Assembly: GCA_047495785.1 (NCBI GenBank)
Contig: JBLDXI010000045.1
Span: forward strand, 434,001-498,000
Length of the DNA stretch: 64,000 nucleotides
Direction: 5' to 3'
Source of the DNA: Lepidodermella squamata
Taxonomy: Eukaryota; Animalia; Gastrotricha
Both the position numbers and the translations under genes were made by a program. Positions within the stretch are counted from its first letter, which is position 1, and each line of letters starts with the position of its first letter. Shown piece after piece: positions 5,500 to 51,035 of this stretch. Below the pieces are notes generated by a model. It saw nothing but the letters and a program-made list of their open reading frames with translations. It searched no databases and was not told the DNA's origin.

Positions 5500-8400
5500 T
5501 GTGTCCTCGCGGAATTTGAAGTTATTTTTCGATTGAATTTCGTGGATTTCCGTCTGAGTGACAAGCGTCGCTGTTGCTCGGCACGGTTGTATTTCTAGCA
5601 TAAAATGCATTTATCACCACTAGGTTTATCATTATTATTTTTATTTGTTATGTCTAAATTATAGGCGAAATCCAATTTGCGGTTCATTACTTCCCTTTCA
5701 CCATTTTAATCCGAAATGCCTCAAGGTTTGCGCCTGTGACCTGCTCGCCGAACTTATGTAGATTGTACAAGATGCATACACGTTTAGCGTAGGCCCATTA
5801 TTAAATTTTCTTCGACGCGTTTTGTACGGCTCCTTAAGCGCTGGCTTTTATTATATTTTAATATTAGTAATGGCGGCGCCGCATGCTTCGTCACCGCTAC
5901 GGTAAAAATGCTCATCCTCTCTGCCCTTCGATTACAATATTTATTATTAATAATAGTAATAATAAAAGACGCAACTTGGTCCTGAGCACAGGGGATGGGC
6001 AGCACACACGGCAAAATGAATTAACCGGCGTGCTGCTGTCTCTGTTTATGGGCGTATTACCGTTCCGCCGTAGTCGCGCGCGCTACGTTTTTGCCTCAAA
6101 TGATAATAATGAAATATTACTATTCCCGTGCCTGCAATTAGAAGATTGGCAAGAAGAAAGGTCGCCATCATCATCATCACATCATCACGACGTCTTCTAT
6201 TCGTTTCGATACAAAACGAGGCGAAAATACTTTTATCCACGTAGCCGACGCCAGAGCGAAATATTAAAGCGCATATTATTAGCAGCAGCATCAGCAGCTC
6301 AGGATATATGCTCGAGCGACCAACATGTCCCGATCATCATCATCGTCGTCAGTGAATGACGAGCGATGCGCGTGACAGTTCAGGCGTGTGGAATACTATT
6401 CGGCAAAACTTGCCAAATTATTCGCCTCTGGCCGCGAGCACACGTTGACGCCGAAGACACTTGACATGTGTTCACGCTAATTTATTAGGTATTGCGCCAT
6501 CAAGTGCGCCGGCGCCGCTCGCTCGGTGCCGAAAATAACACAGAAGCGCGGTTTTACTTTACGCCCGCCAGCGCTAACCGTACGAATTAGCCGCCGAGTG
6601 AGCCACCTGAGGGATGGTGGCGGTGGTGTAATAAAGTCGATGATCTAGAATTTCCGCGCCGTATTAAAACCCCACTTCACCCCGCTTTCTTTTTCGTGTT
6701 TTCGCAAAACATCTGCTACTGGATACTTCGCCTATCGAGTGCGTAACCAAATACGAACATTTTGTATCATCTGACCTAGGGAGTAATAAAACTGGTGTCT
6801 CGCTCGCGGCGATTTGCGATACGGCTCGAGTGTAAGATAATCCGAGCCCAGGCGCAGTGTCACCCACCCATCGCATGCATAATTCGCGTGATGACACAAA
6901 TTCCTGTACTCATCATCATCGATGCTATTCGTCGTCGCACTGGTGATTGACTCCGTGCACACGCCCGCTCGACGCTGATCCGCTCACGGCGACGGTGGCC
7001 ACTCGACTTTGCGCGCGTGTCACTTGCGCAATTTCGATGGTTTTACAGCGCTTAGGTGTAAGTGGCCACAAATTGCTGCTGCTGGTGATAACAACGCCTC
7101 GAGGCCCTTAAGCCGTGTCATCACCCTTCTGTTATCTACCTTACAAGAGCTTATTTACAAGACAGATTTAGCTTTACAGCTATAGGTGATTATTATTATT
7201 ATTTCGCAATAAATCCGCCATCAGGTAAATAACAATTTAATTGCGCAACAATAAAACTCGACACATCATTCATCGGATAAATCAGTTCATTCGCTACAAT
7301 TTCCAGTGTCATAGTAAGTAGTGTTATTTTTTGCTTTTCTTCTGTCTGTCTTTCAGTCTACCTCCGGGTGTGGATAGGATTTTTTGCCTTAAAATAATCA
7401 CTCCCAGGTCGTTTTGGTGTGGTGTTTACGTTTTTTGTGTTGTAAGGCGCCACGTGCAAACCACGTTCCACGTTTTTTGCACACATTTTCTGTGTCTGGT
7501 CGTCGTTTTTGATAATCACAACCTTGATTATTATTTCTCGATTGTTGCGCACCAACATCGACATACGGCGGCGATGGATTTCGTGATTCTTTTTTATAAC
7601 TACTATCGGTGTCATTTGCTATGCGTGTTCAGTAATTGTGAAGGATATGACCGAGAGTTTAATTCCGGGGCGGCGTGGCGCGGCTTTGATGAGCAGGTGC
7701 CTTGCGGCCTGCTTGCGTCAAAACGGATGACGATGATACAGCCCCGCAATTCTCGGTTTCGTGTGTGGTTGTATATGTGCATGCGGCGGCACGCCAGCAA
7801 TTTGCCGGTGTCGGGCGGTAATGCGCGTTGTGATCGGCAGCGATCATCAGAGACATCTGCGCGTCTGTCGAGCACCAGCAAATTACTGCTATTACTCTGT
7901 TATTACTATTTCGAGACACGCTCCTTCGCTCAGGTCTCTCTTTTTCGGTGTTCGCATTAGCAATGCGGTCGTGCGCGCGAGCGAATAATATTTGATCGCT
8001 TTGGCATCGCGACCCGCCTGGCCTGCTCGCTTCGCCGCGCCGTTCGTTCGCCGTTCGTTCATTCGCGCTTTGACAGGAATTTTACACGGGCAACACAACA
8101 ACAACACGCAGAAATTGCACGCGTTGCATTGAGTTTGTAATTTGCGGATGCGATGCGCGTATCCCGCGGGAATTTTTTTCTTCGTGTGCCATGTCGCATT
8201 TGACTCCTCTCTCTGTGTCTGTGACTGCGCGCGCGCACACACGCACGCTCAAATGAATGCGCGGTTCTTTACCACCTCTCCGATACTCCTTCGTGTTCGT
8301 TCGGCCCTGTGCGCGCGCGCTATCAATTTTATTACTTTATTATTAGCATGGTGTGTTGTATCGAAAAGCGGTGATGGGTAGCGACTGCTTTCGGCTGTCA

Positions 8401-11370
8401 ATTATGCAAACGCGGTGTTGAAAATTTTTCGCCTGGCTCAACCTCCTGTCTTGTCGCATTCTGCGATACAGATAGTGACGTCTTTATTATTATTCATTCA
8501 TCGCGTCCGGAGGTGGTGTCGCACTTTGGCGCGTGTTCGAGTAAGTAGCCGGGCGACAAGATGCTGACACTTAGGATCACCGAGAATCGCAAACACCAGC
8601 AATTGACAACCGAGGCGCGCGCGCGCTGTCATATTATTATTATTATTATCATCATTTCGCAGCTTCATCGCCACCCCTCTCCTACGAGCAATAAATGGTA
8701 ATAGGCCTGGCGAATTGATTTAGCCGAACAGATAGGTCGACGGCGCGTGCGCGTGCATCGCTAGCCCATCCCTAAACATGATTATCCAACTCTGGGCTAC
8801 GCGTGACATCTGTGACGGAACGAGGCGCGGCTAATCTGCGCATTGACATCTGTTTGGCGCTGGCCAATCGCAACGCGTCCAGGTCCCGACACATCAGGTT
8901 ATTACGTTCATTTAGTGGCATCGACTCAGCGAGGCGCAATTGACTAAGCCCACAATTAGGTGACCATTAACACCCGAGTGAACTCAGTCATTTTCAAATT
9001 GCATACTCCTATATACGTTTTTAATATACTGGTTTTCGAGGTGATCGTTATATTGGGCGAGTGCGGCGGGGTCGCGTAAAGAGTAGTAAATCGCTTCGTT
9101 CGCATGGCTGCGATAGAATTCGATTTCAAAAAAGCCGCGCCTGCCTGATTCACACCTTCACACTATTTTTGACTTGCTGGTGGCAGCATTCCGCTAATCC
9201 GCGCGCCGCTCTTCAGATCTGCGCGCCGCATCGCATGCGCGACACCTTGTCGCTCAAGTACCGACACGCCCGGTCCGGTGCGGACGCGCTCAAGTAGCCA
9301 TGATTGCACTCGACAACTTCCGCATTACCGGCTCTTGAAACTACTCGTGTACCATCATGTCAGTCGTGACGTGATTTCATTTATAAACCCGGCCTCAACC
9401 TTGGTTGCTAATAGTTTGTGTCTGGCTCGCGAAGTCTCGCTAATGATTTCGAATTTTGGCGCGCTCAAGTTTTTGTAGAATATATTTACCTTATTGCTAT
9501 CTTTCGCTCTCAATATGTCACTTTTCTAAATGATAGTATTTGATCTGCGCGTAATTTGTAACAGAAGCGCTGTTTGTCGGCGAACAGGCGAGAATGCTAA
9601 TTGTCACCGTGGCAGATGTTCTCTAGGTAATAATTGCCCGCCGTGGCTTTTGAGCAGGGCGTTGCGGCGGAAATCGCTCAGCTTTTCGGGGGCGGCCAAA
9701 TTTTATTAGCGAAATTTATCAATAAATAGGCTTAGTCATTTAGCAGCAGCGCGGCCACCAGGCAGGCGTTTGATGTGCAGTGTCGCGCCCTCGGTGTGTC
9801 ACAGTAAACACCAGGCACTCACTCGGCGAGTGACTCGAGGGCGCGGAAGAGGGAGATGATACAAACATTGCAGCGCGGCCTCTAATTGCGGCGGCGGGTC
9901 TAATAACCTATGCACACTTATTTCAATCTATTTTGCTTCCCCGCACTCCGGCCGAGTGTGTATTTTGCAATCATCGTTCGTCACGCTGCAGGAGGCAATT
10001 TTCACGCTTTCGTATTGAATAGGAGCCACTTCTTCTTAATCTTACCTCGAAGGATTTTAGTGTCCCCGTCATATTATTATTATTTATGCCACCACTTCTA
10101 CGTCGTCGATATTAGTATGCGATGATGATTATTCCCCGTCCGTAATCATCGGCACGCGCCCCTCATACTTTAAGTGAGTAAGTTTTCAAGAACCATCCGA
10201 TTGTTGTCTGGCAAGCTACTTCATTATACGCTATTATTACTACCATTTTACTGCAACATTGCTGTTGATGGTGATAATAATAATGACAAATAAATAGCGA
10301 ACGGATTTGCATCTACTTCTGCGTGCTTTCGCCTAAATCGCTCCTGCGGGCGACAAAAGTATCGCCGCGGAAACGAAAACCATTATCTGCTGTCATTTAT
10401 CACCATAATATATCGCCTTGCTTAAGAAACAACTTTGTCGCATGGTCGTCGTTTGTACTACCTACAACTACTACCTTTTTTTATGCCTCAGAGGTGTGAA
10501 GACGCAGAGATGAAACTTAGCCGCGCGTCGACAGGTGTAATTAAACAGCTGCAATAAACGTAAATAACGAACAAGGTGTTCGCCCGGCGTGGCGCGGCGC
10601 GGCAGAAACTGGCTACCTTAGCGTCAAGTGCTATTCTATACTACCCGTCTTTAGTTTGTTGGTTTGTTAGTCGCGTATAGGTGGTTGCAATGATGATTAT
10701 GATTATGATGATAGTGTGTTGTTGGGTAGCGAGGAGCAGGAAGATGCGATCTTCAGCTTATCGCCGCCTTAAATACTAATATTTATCTGGTAAACGGTGT
10801 AAATTTACGTGTTTGCCAGGAACAACACCTTGTTGGCCCGGGTTAAAAATTATGATGATCACGGCCGCCTTTGTAGTTTTTACGGGTGGGGCGCGGCAGC
10901 GGCCGTTTTGAACAGGTGGCCTGCACAGGCGGTTTCATCGTCGTCGTTATAAGTACACACGTAATAATAAATAGACTCCATATCCCCAAGTGATATTAGC
11001 GCGATTATTTGGCTCGAGCAATAATAATCAAAAACGGTAAGAAATCATCATCTTTTTGCAGCGCGCGTCCACCTGTCATTCTTTCCTCCCTATTGCGGCG
11101 CCATAAACAAATGTGGTGCACATTATTACAAGGTAGATGTTTTTTTGCTGCCTCATTTCGAAACTAGGTGTGTGCGCGCGCCGAACATTAAAACTAGTGA
11201 AGTCACGTACCACACTGCCATTACTTCGACAAGCACCTAGCACAACACTTACCTAGTCTGGCCGGTGATCTCACTCACTCAACTCACGTTTCATCGTAAT
11301 CTCGCTAGAAAACTCTTCCGCAACTTGTGTCAATGAAAAAATATACATCGGTTTCTTTTTTCTATAATAG
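5500..11370. promoter_or_regulatory. Extended cis-regulatory region upstream of ZEB
   Basis: No credible ORF or exon chain over ~6 kb in an otherwise packed genome. Rich in GCGCGC, (TTA)n, (ATC)n, TGTCA, TAATT and CACCT/AGGTG motifs, and lies directly upstream of a developmental transcription factor. Confidence 0.6.
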
Positions 11371-11398
11371 AGATTGGTACTGTGCAATAGTTAATTGG

Positions 11399-14979
<3,581 letters not shown>

Positions 14980-16201
14980 TCGCTATTTACTGCTTTTTCT
15001 CTACTCTCGTTTTTTTTGTACAAAAAAAATATGCAAAATTTGTTCTGTCTTCCCGCCGCCACGCTTTTTGTTTGCCGTCTTCCGAAAGAATGAGCCTTAA
15101 AATCCACCGGTCTTCCAGTTGTACATAAAATTTTCGAATGATTTTTTTGTCTCTTGATTCTTCCTCATCTTATTACTATTATTATTATTAAAGAAAGAAA
15201 TCCTCGATTTTTTGATTGATTGATTTGACTTTGATTGATATTGATAATCGCGAGCAATCACGCTAGTCGTCTTCCAGTTTTTTTTTTACACTGAGCAATC
15301 AACTCCTGGTATTATTTGATGCGACTAGTCTTCCTATTATTCGATGAAAAGCTAATCAGCTGGTTCTACGCCAACGCTTCTTTCAATTTATAATCGGTAG
15401 CTTCATCACTACGACTACTCTTATATATCACCCTAAGTTTGAGCACGAGCTACTTGATCAAAAACTAACGAATTCGTATGTACAAAGTTTGCGCTATTTA
15501 CCCACAGTCATTTATACCTGTCTCTTATTATTGGACGTCGACCGCTTGTGCCATTAACCGAGCTGGTTTGTAGTATAGATTCTTATTAACCTCTTGATCG
15601 TTCGATGTAGTGGTGTCACATCTAGTCAAAATGTTGTGTACATACCGCGTCAGGACAATCATTCCGCGCGCGCGCCCTGAAAGAAGCGTGTATTCTTCAG
15701 TGAAATGAAATGACTCAAGGTCTCTTCTCTCTATTTTTTTGTTGTCTGTGGCCATATCTTTCGCCTTTGTAAATAGCGATGCTGAAAAAGTTCTCTCTAT
15801 CTTGTCACCACTTGAAGCGTAAATTATCAAGGCTTTATCCGTTGATGGTTGTTCACGTGTTGCATAAGAAAAACCGTGTTGTAAAGTACTGTATAAGCTA
15901 TATATGCGGGTTTCACTTTTCGAAAAAGTGGCGCCTCTATATTTCACCGTTGTGTTTATGCCTCAGAAGTCTATTCGTCTCTTTTTGTCTGCATACTACA
16001 AATATTTACGCATCTGAATATGTAACGAATATAAATGTTAATATTATTATTATTATTACCTACAAAGTCGTTGCTCTTATTTAGCTTATTTCGTGAAAAA
16101 GTGAACGTTTCGTTGTTTTTTTGAAAAAAAGATGAATAGTAATATGATTAAATATTGGCGAGCGAGCTGCAGTTTATATGTACAAGAAATGATTTAATAA
16201 A
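14980..16201 (+). promoter_or_regulatory. Long ZEB 3'UTR with miR-7, miR-279 and Pumilio elements
   Basis: Five GTCTTCC (15047, 15077, 15110, 15269, 15328); ATCTAGTCA at 15620; TGTAHATA at 15120, 15637 and 15768; AATAAA at 16196. Confidence 0.7.
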
Positions 16202-43279: not shown

Positions 43280-44036
43280 ACAGCGCCTTGGAAAAATAAT
43301 AAAAACAGTCATTTCTTCTTGCCACTCAGCTTTTATTCATTATCATAATATCGTTTTTTGTGTTGATTTTCATTTAGATTTTGTATTCAGCCGTACACGT
43401 TTCGCTAAGTATAAGAAGATCGGGTTTTCACAGCACTATCAATAAGATGATGAGAGAAGCCTACGTAGAAGTTTGGCTAAAACAAGACTGGCGGAGGGTA
43501 GTGAGTAGCAACTCAATGACGATTATTTTGATGCGATAACGACAGCAAATCTTTTTTCTATATATCTGAGGAGAGAAATAATTCATGTGCGCTACAACTG
43601 CAATCACACGCTCATAAAGGTTTTACGTCATCCCAATCGAAAAAGGTTCACAGTATTTTGTTTTCACTCACATCAGAGGTTTGAATAGAACAAGGTGATG
43701 AAAAACGCGGCTACCTCTCGCAAAAAATTGGTATTCAATTCACGTGATAATATCTCAGGTAATATCAGGATGATTATATATTCGCCACGCTTCACTGAAT
43801 CGCAACAAAATAATGATGATTAGGCATCACTCACGCACAGTATTATTATTATAAAGGAGAATTTTCGTATGACGATTTTACGCGACATCAAAAACTCAGG
43901 CTTTTTATAGGGCTACGGCGCGAAACGATAACAAAGCCAAATGTTTATATAATAAGCAGATCGCATATCAGATTTCATCTCAGCCAAAAATCAATTTTTG
44001 ATATTATCGAATTTTTTTAATACTTTTATACGATAA

Positions 44037-45910
44037 TTTATTCTGATTTTTTCTCGATTTTTTTCAAGACGGGGATCACGCTAATTACTATCGCTTGACT
44101 ATCAGATATTCGACGGGTTATATAATGCTGTTCGTTGTTATATGGATGATTTCTCTAGATGAAACTCTTGAAAGTCGGGTAACAATAAAGAGAGTAGAAA
44201 AAGAAAGCCGAAAAAAAATCGAACGCGCTACAAAAAGTTGGCGCCTTCGTTGCTATGTACAACATTTTTGTTTTATCACAGTTTGACAGCTGGCTGTCGA
44301 CAAGGCTTGCGTCCGTACGTCGTTCTTCCCCTCACTTTTTACAACATGCATTCATTTATCACAACATGTCGGTGCTAGATGCATCGACTCGCTTGGTCCC
44401 TGGGCGTCCAAAAACCACCCGCGTCCACGTGTTAGAAAAATATCAATCATCTTCGCACATCACGCCGTCCAATATAATCATTCCATCACGCTCCGTCCAA
44501 CATTCACATCATCTCTCGGTACAGATAAGATGAGAAAATGAGAAAAAAGATTGTTGCGTAATAAGGTAACAAGTCCTATTACAGGCAAGACTTGGCCTAT
44601 ATACAACTGAGATCATTTTTCCGCGCGAAAACTGGCTACGTAAGAATTCTCAATACTATTTAGCAGAGCTATTGCTATCATAGGATACAATAGTTACAGC
44701 TCTTTTAAATAACAACCAGAGAATAGTAGGTATATCGCTGATAGAGTGAGACGTTTTAGTAGAAAAAAATAGAACGAAATCAGTCGTTACAGTATGTTTT
44801 TTTGGTCTTATAATAAGCTTTTAAGATTCTGGCTGAGAGTTTGATAGATTTGAGATTATCTGCTCATCGACTTGCCACTCTGACTCGAATTCGAATTCAT
44901 GACCAAGATGTGCCAATTCGCAGCTTGTCGCTCGCGAACAGTAAGACGAGCATTCCAGATACTCTCTGTATTGAAGATAAAACGTTATAAAAAGGCTGAG
45001 AAATTCGGGTACACCATACTCACCTTACTCGCCCACGAACGAAGCGCGTGTCCTTGATGCTCAGGACGCGGCGCGTCAAATCGCAAGTTAACACGTCTAA
45101 AGAAAATGAACAGAAAAGGTTAGAAATTTCTGGAAAATAGCTGGTGGTTTTTTGGTGGTCTGATCGAAGTGAAAGGTAAAAAGCGCGCTGGGGTGGGCCT
45201 TTTATAGCGCAGGTAGCACGAAAATTGGCTCGGCTGTTCGGTTGTGTTTATGCGCACACAAACTCGCAATAATGAGCGCCTATTTTATTTTAAAACTTAA
45301 AGAATTATTTATGACGCGAGATGAGCGCGCGCGCGCTCAGTGGAGAGAGAAAAATAAAACGCGCCTCGCTCTCTTTCGTCTTCGGGCGAAGGGCGCGCTA
45401 TTCATTATTGAAAGGCAGGTAGTAGGTGTATTGAGCGAAAATTTCGTCGCTCTAAAAGAGCGCGCCGGCTTTGTGTGTTGATTGGCGACGGCGTTGAACG
45501 CAATAATAAAACGCGATAGAACAATAATAGGAGTAATAACAACCGAAAACGTCACAGCAGCAGCAGCAGCGATGGCAGGCAGTTGAATGGCGCGCGCACG
45601 GGAGTGGATGGGCGCGCGCTCGTGTATTGATTGGCGCGCGTCCCTAGCAACAGCGCTCGATGACCTTGCGGCGAGACGCGCGCGCTGTTATAAACGCATA
45701 TAAAATGCAATTGATTGCGTGCTGCCACTTTGATTGCCTTGTCACAGCAGCGCCGGGAGAACGCTCGTACAAGTCGTCCGGTTTCGGGCGCCAAAGTTGA
45801 TTGTTTGCGCTGAACAACGCGCGCGCGCAAGGCGAAAAGCGCAATATTTTATTTATAGTTATATACCTGTGATGGTACTCTAAGATGCGGGCAACACCTG
45901 CGCGTGCGTG
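44037..45910 (-). ncRNA. Putative spliced lncRNA or small-ORF transcript with a miRNA/Pumilio-site-rich 3' region
   Basis: TATAAAA at 45206-45200 and 45941-45935; donor at 45866; acceptor TTTTCTTTAG at 45097; exon 45096-45024; 58-nt intron 45023-44966 (GTGAGT...TACAG); AATAAA at 44042-44037; first AUG ORFs only 18 and 14 aa. Confidence 0.55.
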
Positions 45911-46851
45911 TGGCCAGCGCCTTGTAGCCCACCTTTTTATAGGCCGGGCGGATGTTCGAATGTCGACGAGTGATTTCGGTGACTAAACAGAGCCGTGCGG
46001 CAGCTGTTCGCATCTCCAAGAGCAATCAACAATCATGACATGGGGCCTCTTCGCTGGCTATAATAAAGTAATAATACAGGGCGATGATGATGACAGACGT
46101 CTTGGCAGAGGTAAACGCACCGATCGATCGATCAGGGTTCACCTGCGTTGCAAAACGTGCCGACACAGTGGCAAGTCAAGCCTCGTTAAAATTGTGCGCA
46201 CGCCGCCACCTTAATGGAAAATTATTATCACAGCTATTAATTAGCGATATATAAATTAAATGATTCGAAACGAAACGCGAGAAACAGCGTTTACTTTTAT
46301 TTTCGCGACGAAGCGTGGTTTATAAACTAGGCGTTGCGCGACGTGCGATAATTTTCGTGAATAAAAACCGAGGGAAGCAAGGGAGATAGATGATAAGCTG
46401 GTTGCGGGCGCATCACGCGGTTGCGCAACCGCAAAAATATACCAGCGAGGAGCGTGCGAGTGCGATTTTGTCGGTGCGCACCGGGCGCGCGGCGCCTCGA
46501 AACCAAGAACAATAACATGATTATTATTACGGGCTAAGATAATAATTCTTCCCGGTGCGACAAGTGTCGTCTTCCTCCAGCCGTAATCCATCGAGCCGCA
46601 ACGTTATTAGCCCACACCTTTCTTCATTGCGCACATTATCTCGTTGAGGCCGACCGGGCTCATTCAGCCCAACTTATCAGTGACATCAGGTAACAGTCTA
46701 ATTTTCACGTTACTCTCACGTCGATTTCTTTCGAGATTTGCTGATGAAGCCAGCAAAAAGTGTGGTGAAGTAAATAAAATGAGCTTATGCATAATTGTGA
46801 TGAGGCATGTTTTTGCATATTTTAAACACATCTTGGGATTTGCGAAGCCGA

Positions 46852-46923
46852 GGTTCCATGGTGTAGCGGTTAGCACTCTGGACTCTGAATCCAGCGACTC
46901 GAGTTCGATTCTCGATGGGACCT
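46852..46923 (+). tRNA. tRNA-Gln(CTG)
   Basis: GGTTCCATGGTGTAGCGGTTAGCACTCTGGA-CTCTGAA-TCCAG...GAGTTCGATTCTC...TGGGACCT; 72-nt cloverleaf. Confidence 0.95.
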
Positions 46924-47245
46924 TCACATTTTGCTGGCAATTTTTTTATTTTTATTTTTATTTATTTATTTTTTCATTTTATCAGGTCTGTATTGCAATG
47001 AACAAGCCTGAAATCTTTCCTTATAAAAAAATTAAATTGGCTGTAATAATTCAGATTCCCATCGGATGCAGACATTGATAACTTGAAATAGCAGGAACGT
47101 TATGAAGTTTATGAAAATTACGTGACTCCAGGTATGCTAAGAAAAAGTAAACCAATAATTTTTAAATGGAATAATTTATTAAGCAAAGCCTGTGTCGATG
47201 AAAATAAAAAAGGGTGGTATCCATTGCTAAAATGAATCATATAAT

Positions 47246-47326: not shown

Positions 47327-47464
47327 AGCTTTGCGCAGTGGCAGTTCCATACTCAGTGAGGTGCAAACCGAGAGGTGGAAATTGCTAATTGAAAACTACC
47401 CCAATTACCCGCTCTGAGGACCTACGGGTCCCCTGTAGCACTTTCTGGAGCCCCACAAGGGGCT
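47327..47464 (+). ncRNA. U4: U4 spliceosomal snRNA
   Basis: 5' AGCTTTGCGCAGTGGCAGT (U4/U6 stem II); k-turn stem-loop with TGAGG...CCGAG; TTGCTAATTGAAAACT (stem I); Sm-position ACTTTCTGG between hairpins; terminal hairpin AGCCCC-ACAA-GGGGCT. Confidence 0.93.
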
Positions 47465-47558: not shown

Positions 47559-48758
47559 TTAGCTGGAAAACGGGCTTTGTACTTCAGATTGACCTCCTAA
47601 GAAAGCGTCTGGCCACAGACCAAGTATAGGCGATAAGGCGCTTTGACAGTATTCCGTCGATTCTGTCATATCGGAGCTGTAAGATGCAGAGCTAGCTGCC
47701 TCCAAATCATCCATCGAAGTGCGCATATCGTCAAAAAACGCGTCGTCAATCAGTGCCGTCGTACATGGTGGAGGTTCGATTGGATAATGTTTGCAGACAA
47801 TGCACTCGAGATCGTTTGAAAACGGATTAAATACCGGGAAAACTTCGATTTTCGTGTTCAAAAACGTCCCGTCTTTACGAACAGCAACCAGCCCATGAAC
47901 AACCGCCTTATTCGCCCGCCCTTGAACAGCACTCGTCAGTACCTGTGTGATAGTTTCGTAAAATTGAGGATAGACGCTCAAGAAAAAATTTGCGCCAATA
48001 GCCTCGAGCGGTAGCCAGCCAATCGCTTGAGTCATTTTTTCGTCTGCGAAAGTTGTTGTGAACATTTCGTCGAACTGATGCCTGGTTGTGAAATGGCGCG
48101 AAGTGACTGGTTCGAGAATTGAACTCTGCGGCCGAATCCATCTCGCGAGACCGACAAAACACAAAGTAAGCTCATCGTAAGATGCAAGTTGCCCGCAAAC
48201 TTCGAACGGTTTCGATTCGGAATCGCCGTTATAAGATCTTAAATTACAATGAAAATGCCGCCGCCGACTTCCACGGCCGATTTCAATCGGCGATTGCATT
48301 GAGGACCGGATACGGATCAAATCTTGATCACTGCCTGATATTTGATCGAAAATAGTCGAATTCAGCCACGATTCTTGCGTAGCGCCGAGTAAGTTGAAAA
48401 CAGTTGGTGTTACAAAGCGAATTCGCCCGGTATTGATATCGGCGGCGAAAATGAAGCTATCCGTCGCTGTGAGCAATAATTTGGCGAATTCGTCGTCGTC
48501 TAAGAACTGGGCCTGTCTCGCCGACTGCGCTCGAATCAAATCGACAGCCCATTTCATCACCTCCAGTTTTATTGGGTTTTTTCGTTTGCGAATGGCACCT
48601 GATGAAGACGACGCGGCTGGTTTATTCCTGCCTTCTGTGATCCAGTTGCGATACTGATGTAGCATCAGAATGAACTTTTTAAATTCATGCCGGCGACGTC
48701 GCTCCACTTCAGCATGGCTAATAGTTGGTGATGGCTCGTTAGGTGAAACGTTGCTCAT
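47559..48758 (-). CDS. Divergent ARNT/BMAL-class bHLH-PAS factor, intronless
   Basis: Basic region SHAEVERRRR, helix 2 KLEVMKWAVDLI, PAS-A entry FLDDDEFAKLLLTATDSFIF, PAS-B FTTRH, PAC end FNPFSNDLECIVCKH. Confidence 0.82.
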   Translation of the reverse strand: MSNVSPNEPSPTISHAEVERRRRHEFKKFILMLHQYRNWITEGRNKPAASSSSGAIRKRKNPIKLEVMKWAVDLIRAQSARQAQFLDDDEFAKLLLTATDSFIFAADINTGRIRFVTPTVFNLLGATQESWLNSTIFDQISGSDQDLIRIRSSMQSPIEIGRGSRRRHFHCNLRSYNGDSESKPFEVCGQLASYDELTLCFVGLARWIRPQSSILEPVTSRHFTTRHQFDEMFTTTFADEKMTQAIGWLPLEAIGANFFLSVYPQFYETITQVLTSAVQGRANKAVVHGLVAVRKDGTFLNTKIEVFPVFNPFSNDLECIVCKHYPIEPPPCTTALIDDAFFDDMRTSMDDLEAASSASYSSDMTESTEYCQSALSPILGLWPDAFLGGQSEVQSPFSS

Positions 48759-49751: not shown

Positions 49752-51035
49752 TTAAATCGGCGAATTATCATAATTGGTCGATGACGAATAAGGAGGAGTA
49801 CCGAATGTTCCGAGCGCCGCTGTAGTCTCATTGTTTGTCCCAACGGCCTGAACTCCTTGAACCAAATTGGGTGGCGAATGGCCTCCAGTTGGCATAAACG
49901 CTGCCGACGGATGGTGAATCGGATTACCAAGCGTGGCCGGGTAGTGCTTGCAAACGATGAATAGCACTCTTTTAGAGAATGGGTTCACGATTGGAGCAAT
50001 TTTTACGTCGAAAATCGTCGAGCCTACGAAGCCATATTGAGCAACTGCTTGCAACCCACTAATCACACGCTGTTCCGTCGTTGCGCCACTCGCGATTGCG
50101 TTGAGATATTCAGAAAGCTGCGAATCGAAAGCGTCCGCGTAAATCGATCGCAAAAAATTTGGCACTGTCGCGAAATCGTGAGGCCACTTCCAGCCTAAAT
50201 AACACGTTAATCGATGATCTGCGTAAGTGACCGGAAAGTTCGGCGCCTCGATTTTGTGACGAGTCGTGAAATGATCGGAATTCGACTCGGCGACGAACCC
50301 CGGCGTCTCTCGAATCAATTGAGCAGCCGCTACGAAGCAATTGCCATTTTTAAGGTGGCCACTGATTCGAAATTTTTGATAATTGCCGTTATTATTCGAT
50401 CTGATTTTGCAGTGAACTTCACTACTTGTCGCGTGTTCAGCATCGATTCTCGGTGATTCAGGCGATGAAGTGACTGTGTAGTTGAAAATTCGTGAATCTT
50501 CAGGGTGAATGAATTCATTAATCGATGGCGAGGACAGCCAATCATTTGCTGTGAACCCGGTTAAATCCCAGACGGAATTTGTGACGGCTAATACTTTACC
50601 GTTCGGGATACGAATCGAAAACATGAAGCAATCACAGGCTTTCAGCATCAAGCCCTGGAATTCGTTGTCTGACGTGAAAAGCGGCCGGTTAATCGCGGTG
50701 TTAAACGGTGGTTGGCATTCAATAAATTCGATGGTTTTCTCTAAAATCGCCAGCTTTTTCGGCCGCCGATCGCCGCTGGAAGGCTGGTCGTCTATGTAAC
50801 TCGCATCAAGCTGTAGACACCTTGGAACGTACTGCCCCAGCATTTGGACGTATTTAGTAAATTTCATCCGCCGGCACTGCTCGACCTCGCGGTGCGTTCT
50901 TCGCCGGCGCTCGGTTAACGGGTCAATATCGCCGTAGTCGTAGTCTGCCGATTCACATTTTGCACTGTTTGAATCGAGCAGCTCATCGTCAAGCGAACTG
51001 TGCCCCCTCATGTCGTCCATTCCATGCATTGACAT
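49752..51035 (-). CDS. Second divergent ARNT/BMAL-class bHLH-PAS factor, intronless
   Basis: RRRTHREVEQCRR, KKLAILEKTIEFI, SDNEFQGLMLKACDCFMF, FIHPED, FTTRH, NPFSKRVLFIVCKHYP; collinear with the neighbour. Confidence 0.82.
   Translation of the reverse strand: MSMHGMDDMRGHSSLDDELLDSNSAKCESADYDYGDIDPLTERRRRTHREVEQCRRMKFTKYVQMLGQYVPRCLQLDASYIDDQPSSGDRRPKKLAILEKTIEFIECQPPFNTAINRPLFTSDNEFQGLMLKACDCFMFSIRIPNGKVLAVTNSVWDLTGFTANDWLSSPSINEFIHPEDSRIFNYTVTSSPESPRIDAEHATSSEVHCKIRSNNNGNYQKFRISGHLKNGNCFVAAAQLIRETPGFVAESNSDHFTTRHKIEAPNFPVTYADHRLTCYLGWKWPHDFATVPNFLRSIYADAFDSQLSEYLNAIASGATTEQRVISGLQAVAQYGFVGSTIFDVKIAPIVNPFSKRVLFIVCKHYPATLGNPIHHPSAAFMPTGGHSPPNLVQGVQAVGTNNETTAALGTFGTPPYSSSTNYDNSPI

Follow-up and report, generated by a model that had tools for sequence, protein, structure and literature searches.

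A candidate spliced minus-strand transcript with a strand-specific array of microRNA and Pumilio sites in the gastrotrich Lepidodermella squamata

Several described RNAs that carry sites for microRNAs or Pumilio offer points of comparison for a locus of Lepidodermella squamata, which we analyzed within a stretch of 64,000 nucleotides of the genome (hereafter, the window). Cyrano (OIP5-AS1) and the triggers of target-directed microRNA degradation (TDMD), which in Drosophila include the lncRNA Marge, lack a long ORF, and one of their sites engages a specific microRNA at its seed as well as its 3' end; the loss of the microRNA that such triggers cause depends on ZSWIM8. NORAD is a lncRNA that sequesters Pumilio. 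Sponges, such as CDR1as and linc-MD1 (the latter with sites for miR-133 and miR-135), are also non-coding. Finally, developmental regulators can be controlled through their 3' UTRs, e.g., in Drosophila, hid by bantam and the E(spl)/Brd genes through K boxes. For Gastrotricha, to our knowledge, neither microRNA targets nor long non-coding RNAs have been described.

The locus studied here, at 44.0-45.2 kb on the minus strand, resembles each of these systems in part. Like Cyrano and the TDMD triggers, it has no long ORF and one site, for Bantam, in which seed and 3' end are both paired, but the target loop of this site (9-11 nt) is longer and many ordinary sites for other microRNAs lie around it. 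Like NORAD, it is putatively non-coding and contains UGUAHAUA elements, but there are only two of these, no repeat units are apparent, and the window holds no other copy of the region, which also led us to reject the idea of a duplicated element. Two Pumilio elements correspond to the dose of a regulated target and not to that of a decoy. Hence, the analogies with Cyrano and NORAD that had been drawn in the initial annotation hold for the missing ORF and for the pairing of the Bantam site, but not for the loop or the number of Pumilio elements. The locus shares with sponges the apparent lack of coding capacity and the presence of sites for several microRNAs, including Mir-133, yet two sites per family is the maximum (reached by Mir-2 and Mir-76), a pattern that is target-like rather than sponge-like. 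In the 3' UTR of ZEB, in the same window, diverse single sites and Pumilio elements are arranged likewise, on the sense strand and with a stop codon before and AATAAA after them. Unlike such 3' UTRs of developmental regulators, the array is preceded by no assignable protein-coding ORF. We consider, with roughly even confidence, that the locus may be an independent RNA polymerase II unit, either a lncRNA or a micropeptide mRNA, that would be repressed by microRNAs and Pumilio.

The signals expected of such a unit are found in order on the minus strand. The proximal TATA box TATAAAA (45206-45200; GCTATAAAAGG) precedes an initiator-like TCACTTC (45171..45177), and the distance of 31 nt between the first T of the box and the A at 45175 makes this A the likely transcription start. 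There is a second TATAAAA upstream (45941-45935, within CCTATAAAAAGG), with an initiator-like CCACACG about 30 nt downstream of it. The window has three occurrences of the 10-mer CTATAAAARG, all of them on the minus strand. The proximal start is followed by a leader, or candidate outron (45097..45175), whose pyrimidine-rich 3' end leads to the acceptor tttctttag/ACG (45097/45096); with 15 pyrimidines out of 17, this is the strongest acceptor of the minus strand between 46.9 and 43.7 kb. Next come a 73-nt exon without AUG (45024..45096) and a consensus GT..AG intron of 58 nt (AAG/GTGAGT ... caatacag/AG; 44966..45023), of typical size for the window, where other introns have about 57-170 nt. The donor at 45023 is the only one above 4.5 bits on the same strand from 46.9 to 43.7 kb. 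The terminal exon (44016..44965; about 0.93 kb) runs past AATAAA (44042-44037) and ATTAAA (44021-44016), and we found no further poly(A) signal between 44821 and 44042. Thus, the two TATA boxes, the 73-nt exon, the canonical intron and the AATAAA of the initial annotation are all present, and the view that the candidate unit is self-contained, with its own promoter, splice and poly(A) signals on the minus strand, is supported.

The start of the mature RNA is less clear. A first exon had been proposed at 45867..45911, ending in CAG/GTATAT and joined to 45096. We consider this junction, and with it the model of two promoters, doubtful because the donor at 45867 is weak (2.5 bits, versus 8.1 bits for the donor at 45023). 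This putative exon contains no AUG, and the fold around it is no better than that of shuffled sequences (z 0.06). Since there is no good donor upstream of the acceptor at 45097, a spliced leader is probably added there, and by these signals its addition at 45096 seems at least as likely as the two-promoter model. We also considered a gene for the spliced-leader RNA itself at 45911-45770, which should have a short exon with a donor, an Sm site and a stable stem-loop and be multicopy, and rejected it, given the same fold statistic and the single copy in the window.

Runs of (GC)n and CCAAT/CAATCAA-like motifs form a block at 45183..45828, presumably regulatory DNA in the style of the ZEB locus. 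The window has 43 GCGCGC hexamers, of which 45-46 kb accounts for 17 and the stretch in or before ZEB, at 6-12 kb, for almost all others; the heptamer GCGCGCG is about 78-fold more frequent in the block and in 6-12 kb than in the remaining window. These counts agree with the earlier remark that 45.2-46.6 kb and the region upstream of ZEB have a common GCGCGC texture. We rejected the possibility that the unit extends the upstream bHLH-PAS gene, which has its own stop followed by AATAAA 62 nt on, and which is separated from the unit by a U4 gene on the opposite strand and a tRNA gene.

The most informative part of the locus is the array of microRNA sites. We searched for it with seeds of the published microRNAs of L. 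squamata (Fromm et al. 2019, PMC6468455), in place of the fly and worm sequences used in the initial annotation; the set omits four of the six novel microRNAs of the species. The minus strand of 44042-44820 (779 nt) contains 11 seed sites, including four 8mers, one each for Bantam, Mir-2, Mir-133 and Mir-76. Mir-124 and Mir-279, for which the generally known seeds were used, have no site in the candidate. Dinucleotide shuffles give means of 0.55 8mers and 3.5 sites (P 0.003 for 8mers and 0.0006 for all sites), and permuted decoy seeds give similar values (P 0.004 and 0.0007). The plus strand of the array has no 8mer and two weak sites, an asymmetry of 11:2 (P 0.01). Hence, the sites for bantam, miR-31, miR-2, miR-133 and miR-76 first noticed on the minus strand hold with the microRNAs of the species itself, and their density exceeds that of both the opposite strand and the shuffles. 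A sliding scan of both strands of the 64 kb revealed comparable clusters only in the flanks of ZEB, on its sense strand. The ZEB 3' UTR, with five Mir-7 sites, serves as a positive control. The ZEB 5' leader also has a sense-strand cluster, which indicates that clusters of this kind occur outside 3' UTRs as well and counts against our reading of the locus. The array lies wholly between the last candidate stop codons and the AATAAA, such that the sites are enriched on the sense strand, downstream of a stop and before the poly(A) signal, as in a canonical microRNA-regulated 3' UTR. That it acts as a strand-specific response region for microRNAs and Pumilio is a supported prediction.

Could such a cluster arise by chance in untranscribed intergenic or regulatory DNA, where motifs and splice-like signals have no function at the RNA level? 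The region was chosen after the fact from a 64-kb read, and a few sites of the grade of the Bantam one are expected by chance in the genome (about 6, by our estimate). However, over the two strands of the entire 64 kb, chance would give only about 0.1 windows with at least 11 sites, the strand asymmetry is marked, and TATA box, initiator, acceptor, donor, acceptor, array and AATAAA are independent signals that follow each other on one strand in the right order. The Pumilio motif adds an enrichment independent of that of the seeds: the stretch of the array has 2 of the 11 UGUAHAUA elements of the window, where 0.07 are expected (P 0.002), and 5 of the 11 fall in either the candidate region or the ZEB 3' UTR. 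We thus regard a chance cluster as very unlikely.

The sites spread over the array as follows, all on the minus strand. A Mir-137 7mer-m8 (44670..44676), absent from the initial annotation, comes first, followed by the Bantam site (44608..44637). The Pumilio element UGUAUAUA (44598..44605) starts 2 nt past the Bantam seed match, and the Mir-31 site (44583..44597) combines a 7mer-m8 (44590-44584), 25 nt from the Bantam seed match, with supplementary pairing, at about -26 to -27 kcal/mol. Further on are a 7mer-m8 for Mir-216-P2 (44439..44445), also new to this analysis, a Mir-133 8mer (44393..44400), and a K-box-like 7mer-A1 for Mir-2 (44357..44363) that overlaps a 7mer-A1 for Mir-67. A second Mir-2 site (44274..44305) consists of an 8mer (44281-44274) and seven pairs to the 3' end of Mir-2-P2 (44305-44299). 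The second Pumilio element, UGUACAUA (44254..44261), precedes two Mir-76 sites, a 7mer-A1 (44246..44252) and an 8mer (44131..44138). Both Pumilio elements had been noted before and both match UGUAHAUA.

The Bantam site raises the additional question of whether the RNA could act on the microRNA itself. It pairs with nucleotides 1-8 of Lsq-Bantam-P1/P2/P3 through an 8mer (44615-44608) and with nucleotides 13-23 through 11 contiguous Watson-Crick pairs (44637-44627) to the species-specific 3' end GAAAACUGGCU, which was not available to the initial annotation, or 13 pairs if one G:U is allowed. At -29.4 kcal/mol it ranks first by duplex energy among the 420 seed-matched sites of the window, and none of the other sites among 1419 6mer matches reaches its 11 nt of 3' pairing. 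The published criteria of TDMDfinder ask for at least seven consecutive pairs in the 3' region and a central bulge of 2-8 nt (PMC8887481), and for the Serpine1 trigger a central bulge of up to 7 nt was tested and tolerated (PMC6081425). The site has the canonical seed match of a trigger (7mer or 8mer) and well over the seven 3' pairs, and its energy ratio to the optimal trigger duplex is 1.0 for P2/P3, 1.04 for P1 and 0.89 for P4 (threshold 0.7-0.8). Its loop, with 9-11 nt on the target side against 2-4 unpaired nucleotides of the microRNA, narrowly exceeds both bulge limits. The idea that the plus strand of 44608-44637 encodes a Bantam-like microRNA was rejected, as neither strand forms a hairpin.

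If the RNA were a lncRNA whose main task is to act on its binders, it would use the extended site to trigger the degradation of Bantam, and it would titrate Mir-31, Mir-2, Mir-133, Mir-76 and Pumilio. The absence of a long ORF, the pairing of 11-13 nucleotides up to the last one of Bantam at an energy ratio of 1.0 to an idealized trigger, and additional 3' pairing at two other sites, those for Mir-31 and Mir-2-P2 (ranks 13 and 14 of 420), are in line with such a role. Yet the array, with its one or two sites per family and two Pumilio elements, is unlike sponges or NORAD, the target loop is longer than in the studies above, and titration would require abundance. We consider this explanation quite unlikely. 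A narrower version, which we find decidedly improbable, is that the RNA could be a dedicated non-coding regulator of Bantam, whose degradation would be triggered by the site pairing with the seed and the full 3' end. Access to this site would be controlled by the Pumilio element next to it and by the Mir-31 site, the extended pairing of which overlaps the Bantam seed match. If true, no TDMD trigger would have been described before in Spiralia, and this one would combine a target loop of unusual length with a built-in competition between three binders.

Dense targeting by microRNAs is usually selected on protein-coding mRNAs. This counts against a non-coding reading, since a coding sequence may have been missed. 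The first AUG of the predicted mature RNA, 12 nt past the acceptor at 44966, opens an ORF of 18 codons and a stop (44897..44953, minus strand), and this spacing between acceptor and AUG recurs often upstream of other genes in the window. The longest AUG ORF has 36 codons (shuffle mean, 51), in agreement with the initial claim that there is no long one. Pfam gave no domain in six ORFs and frame pieces of the region, Rfam (E-value mode) matched no RNA family to it, and phmmer, run with the 47-residue frame of exon 3 alone, found no homologue among 1.84 billion representative proteins. By these searches, in which the exons were taken singly, the RNA has no ORF of coding length, domain or homologue, as expected of a lncRNA.

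The array could instead be the 3' UTR of an ordinary mRNA for a small protein whose start codon lies in an unplaced exon. A frame of 71 codons is open from the start of the 73-nt exon through the splice junction, all seed sites lie downstream of its stop, and its part in exon 3 scores 0.21 bits per codon for codon usage, more than anything else on the minus strand of the region and similar to real exons, although this score separates coding from non-coding sequence poorly at such length. The openness of the frame is only marginally unusual (P 0.07 alone, 0.005 with a second open frame), and the frame has no AUG. One could be provided by a mini-exon of 15 codons (46663-46618, minus strand), spliced past the GC-run block to 45096 and joining the frame in phase, for a product of about 87 residues with its stop at 44823-44821. 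But this exon, the sole one upstream with an AUG in phase, ends in a mediocre donor (3.9 bits), and its splicing would take an intron of 1.5 kb, far above the sizes seen in the window. We found no upstream exon that has both an AUG in phase and a good donor, so that the exon that could turn the unit into an ordinary mRNA lacks a convincing candidate. Together with the lack of a Pfam match and of homologues, this leads us to consider a conventional coding mRNA unlikely.

Searches for relatives were negative. Exact-protein look-ups of the neighbouring genes found none on record, and a word search for the bHLH-PAS protein of 399 residues encoded nearby gave no match. Among metagenomes, a DNA scan for the pattern of the Bantam plus Mir-31 sites had no matches, and the 66 pattern matches of a scan based on protein included no relative.

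Coming back to a unit repressed through its own array, we infer its transcription, its splice junctions, the use of a spliced leader and the effects on the RNA or on microRNAs as follows. Transcription would begin by means of the TATA box at 45206 and the initiator around 45175, and a leader of about 80 nt would run to the strong acceptor at 45097, where a spliced leader would probably be added. The 73-nt exon, the 58-nt intron and the terminal exon of 0.93 kb to the AATAAA at 44042 would then give a mature RNA of about 1 kb. As this RNA would have only tiny ORFs, the first AUG leading to 18 codons, it could be a lncRNA or a micropeptide mRNA. The array, 0.55 kb long (44676-44131), would be mainly a repression module acting on its own RNA: single or double sites for Bantam, Mir-31, Mir-2, Mir-133, Mir-76 and probably Mir-137 and Mir-216, together with the two Pumilio elements, would limit where and when the RNA persists, in a logic similar to that of the 3' UTRs of developmental regulators. 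In addition, the Bantam site may feed back on Bantam by target-directed degradation.

The locus is a concrete, sequence-defined candidate that the published microRNAs of the animal itself match with strong statistics. If transcribed, it would provide a compact reporter of 0.55 kb for at least five microRNA families and, together with ZEB in the same window, would be evidence that the sequence by itself suffices to find clusters of target sites in this genome. It would also be a test case for whether Gastrotricha share with flies and mammals the architecture of microRNA targets, the co-regulation by Pumilio and possibly the target-directed degradation of microRNAs.

The array of microRNA and Pumilio sites that the initial annotation had observed on the minus strand of the candidate transcript unit is confirmed, well beyond chance. 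We searched the array region (44042-44820, 779 nt) with the species' own seeds, taken from 41 mature Lepidodermella squamata (Lsq) microRNAs in Supplementary File 1 of Fromm et al. 2019 (PMC6468455). The minus strand carries 11 sites, namely 8mers for Bantam-P1/P2/P3, Mir-133, Mir-2, and Mir-76, 7mer-m8 sites for Mir-31, Mir-137, and Mir-216-P2, and 7mer-A1 sites for Mir-2, Mir-76, Mir-67, and Mir-242, against two weak ones on the plus strand. Presumed seeds of the Mir-124 and Mir-279 families supplemented the 41 sequences. Dinucleotide shuffles of the region contain on average 0.55 8mers and 3.5 sites in total (P = 0.003 for at least four 8mers and 0.0006 for at least 11 sites), and permuted decoy seeds gave P values of 0.004 (8mers) and 0.0007 (all sites). 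The window holds 11 UGUAHAUA Pumilio elements on its two strands; two lie in the array region (P = 0.002) and three in the 3' UTR of ZEB, the plus-strand protein gene that provides an internal positive control.

When a 779-nt frame was slid along both strands of the window, the only regions equal to or above the array lay beside ZEB on the plus strand, its sense strand. Clustered seed sites in this genome thus go with a classic microRNA-regulated gene, and with its sense strand. The ZEB 3' UTR (14980 to ~15900, plus) has five Mir-7 sites within 300 nt (15048-15335; two 8mers and three 7mer-m8), further 8mers for Novel-2, Mir-219, and Mir-279 (the last by its presumed family seed), and Pumilio elements at 15120, 15637, and 15768. 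In L. squamata, ZEB thus looks strongly targeted by both Mir-7 and Pumilio. The second ZEB cluster (10.9-11.9 kb, plus) lies just before and into the first coding exon; a probable ZEB coding exon starts near 11399. Within this cluster, 10992-11390 looks like the ZEB 5' leader and contains six 8mers for six microRNAs (Mir-216, Mir-137, Mir-315, Mir-34, Bantam, and Mir-92), with none on the opposite strand; this seed cluster falls outside a 3' UTR. The candidate is the third cluster, and it is found on the same strand as its TATA, splice, and poly(A) signals. A chance cluster within untranscribed DNA is the reading that we hold least probable.

The two loci have something else in common. The initial annotation had remarked on a similar texture upstream of ZEB and in the candidate, and this likeness holds: (GC)n runs fill the 45.18-45.83 kb block of the candidate, and alternating-GC runs of at least three repeats are almost confined to ZEB (6075-11181 and 15665) and the candidate (45183-45828), with GCGCGCG enriched ~78-fold at these loci relative to the rest of the window. 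This near exclusivity hints at transcriptional control in common; the alternating-GC run may be a shared transcription-factor motif or a Z-DNA-prone motif.

The minus-strand elements listed in the initial annotation are all present, within a few bases of the positions given for them. There are two TATAAAA boxes, at 45941-45935 and 45206-45200, the latter followed, 31 nt downstream, by the A of an initiator-like TCACTTC. The 73-nt exon (45096-45024) follows the acceptor tttctttag|ACG (45097/45096) and precedes a 58-nt intron (45023-44966), whose donor, AAG|GTGAGT, is perfect; AATAAA at 44042-44037 is followed by ATTAAA at 44021-44016. In the 3.2 kb of minus strand scanned, the donor at 45023 is the only one above 4.5 bits and 45097 is the best acceptor. 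The donor of the proposed first exon (45867|GTATAT) scores only 2.5 bits, which makes the junction 45867^45096 doubtful. Judging from the signals, it is at least as likely that the acceptor at 45096, having no good upstream donor, takes a spliced leader. Two AATAAA motifs (45848-45853 and 45284-45289, minus) lie downstream of the 45941 TATA box, and this promoter might instead drive a separate ~0.6 kb transcript over the GC-run block, rather than an alternative first exon. The extended motif CTATAAAARG occurs three times in the window, always on the minus strand and within 2 kb (45.94, 45.21, and 43.91 kb). The third copy of this promoter motif, CCTATAAAAAG (TATA 43909-43903, minus), lies directly past the poly(A) signals of the candidate. 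It is followed ~570 nt downstream by an AATAAA (~43337-43332, minus), with all intervening ORFs at most 48 codons long, and 43332-43909 (minus) may be a second short noncoding unit in tandem.

Could the candidate encode a protein? The absence of a long AUG ORF is borne out, the longest in the putative spliced RNA being 36 codons (shuffle mean, 51). The first AUG, at 44953, is 12 nt past the 44966 acceptor and opens an ORF of 18 codons; similarly short acceptor-to-AUG spacing is found before other genes of the window. A frame lacking AUG runs for 71 codons without a stop; it begins with the 73-nt exon, crosses the junction, and ends at the stop codon 44823-44821 (P = 0.07 alone). A second frame is open for 46 codons (joint P = 0.005). 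Up to 47.56 kb, no upstream in-phase AUG exon has a donor of at least 4 bits; the best (46663-46618, 15 codons, 3.9 bits) would require a 1.5-kb intron. There was no match in Pfam for any piece of the candidate (exons searched singly), in 1.84 billion representatives for the 47-residue exon-3 part (phmmer), among Rfam families, or for relatives in two metagenome scans; the protein and contig collections searched gave no entry for L. squamata proteins. An ordinary mRNA for a small protein, with its start exon missed, is in our view unlikely.

The window is compact animal DNA with short introns and 43% GC, as in the published assembly (122 Mb, 157 contigs, 43% GC; PMC11660948). Upstream lie two tandem single-exon bHLH-PAS-like paralogues (47559-48758 and 49752-51035, minus; Pfam PAS and HLH matches); a word-based protein search found no relative of the 399-residue protein. 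The candidate is a separate unit, because both paralogues have their own AATAAA 62 nt past the stop codon, and genes for tRNA-Gln(CTG) (46851-46925, plus) and U4 snRNA (47327-47462, plus; Rfam 103.6 bits) intervene between its upstream block and the bHLH-PAS genes.

Within the array, the Bantam site (44637-44608, minus) consists of AGCCAGTTTTC, 11 unpaired nt, and TGATCTCA. It pairs with nt 1-8 and 13-23 of Lsq-Bantam-P1, P2, and P3, matching a 3' end specific to the published Lsq-Bantam, where the fly sequence used in the initial annotation differs. The most abundant paralogue is P3, with 63,176 reads (Fromm et al. 2019, PMC6468455). Among 1419 6mer seed matches for all microRNAs in the window, this site alone has 11 contiguous 3' pairs. 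Scored by duplex energy relative to the perfect duplex, it comes first among 420 sites with a seed match (7-mer, nt 2-8), with the Mir-31 and Mir-2-P2 sites in places 13 and 14, and it has the same energy as an idealised trigger duplex of target-directed microRNA degradation. Its target-side loop of 9-11 nt exceeds the TDMDfinder range of 2-8 nt (PMC8887481) and the 7-nt loop that is tolerated in the case of Serpine1 (PMC6081425). By our own estimate, sites of this grade are expected by chance ~0.003 times per window and ~6 times per genome, hence the site alone is no proof; its credibility comes from its setting within the array. At the Bantam site, no microRNA hairpin forms on either strand. 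A Pumilio element begins 2 nt past the Bantam seed match, which lies 25 nt from that of Mir-31, and predicted Mir-31 3' pairing overlaps the Bantam seed match. This arrangement suggests that the three binders would compete or cooperate. That the RNA is a lncRNA whose main effect is on its binders seems somewhat less probable than the small-protein mRNA.

We give roughly an even chance to a short spliced RNA with its own promoter and no long ORF, predicted to be itself heavily repressed by several microRNAs and Pumilio, with one Bantam site of trigger-like architecture. The earlier interpretation, an undescribed regulatory lncRNA or micropeptide mRNA integrating several microRNAs, is partly supported. 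The candidate adds an example to known kinds and does not establish a new one. To our knowledge, no microRNA target or lncRNA candidate has been described in Gastrotricha, and its value is that of a first concrete one for this group.
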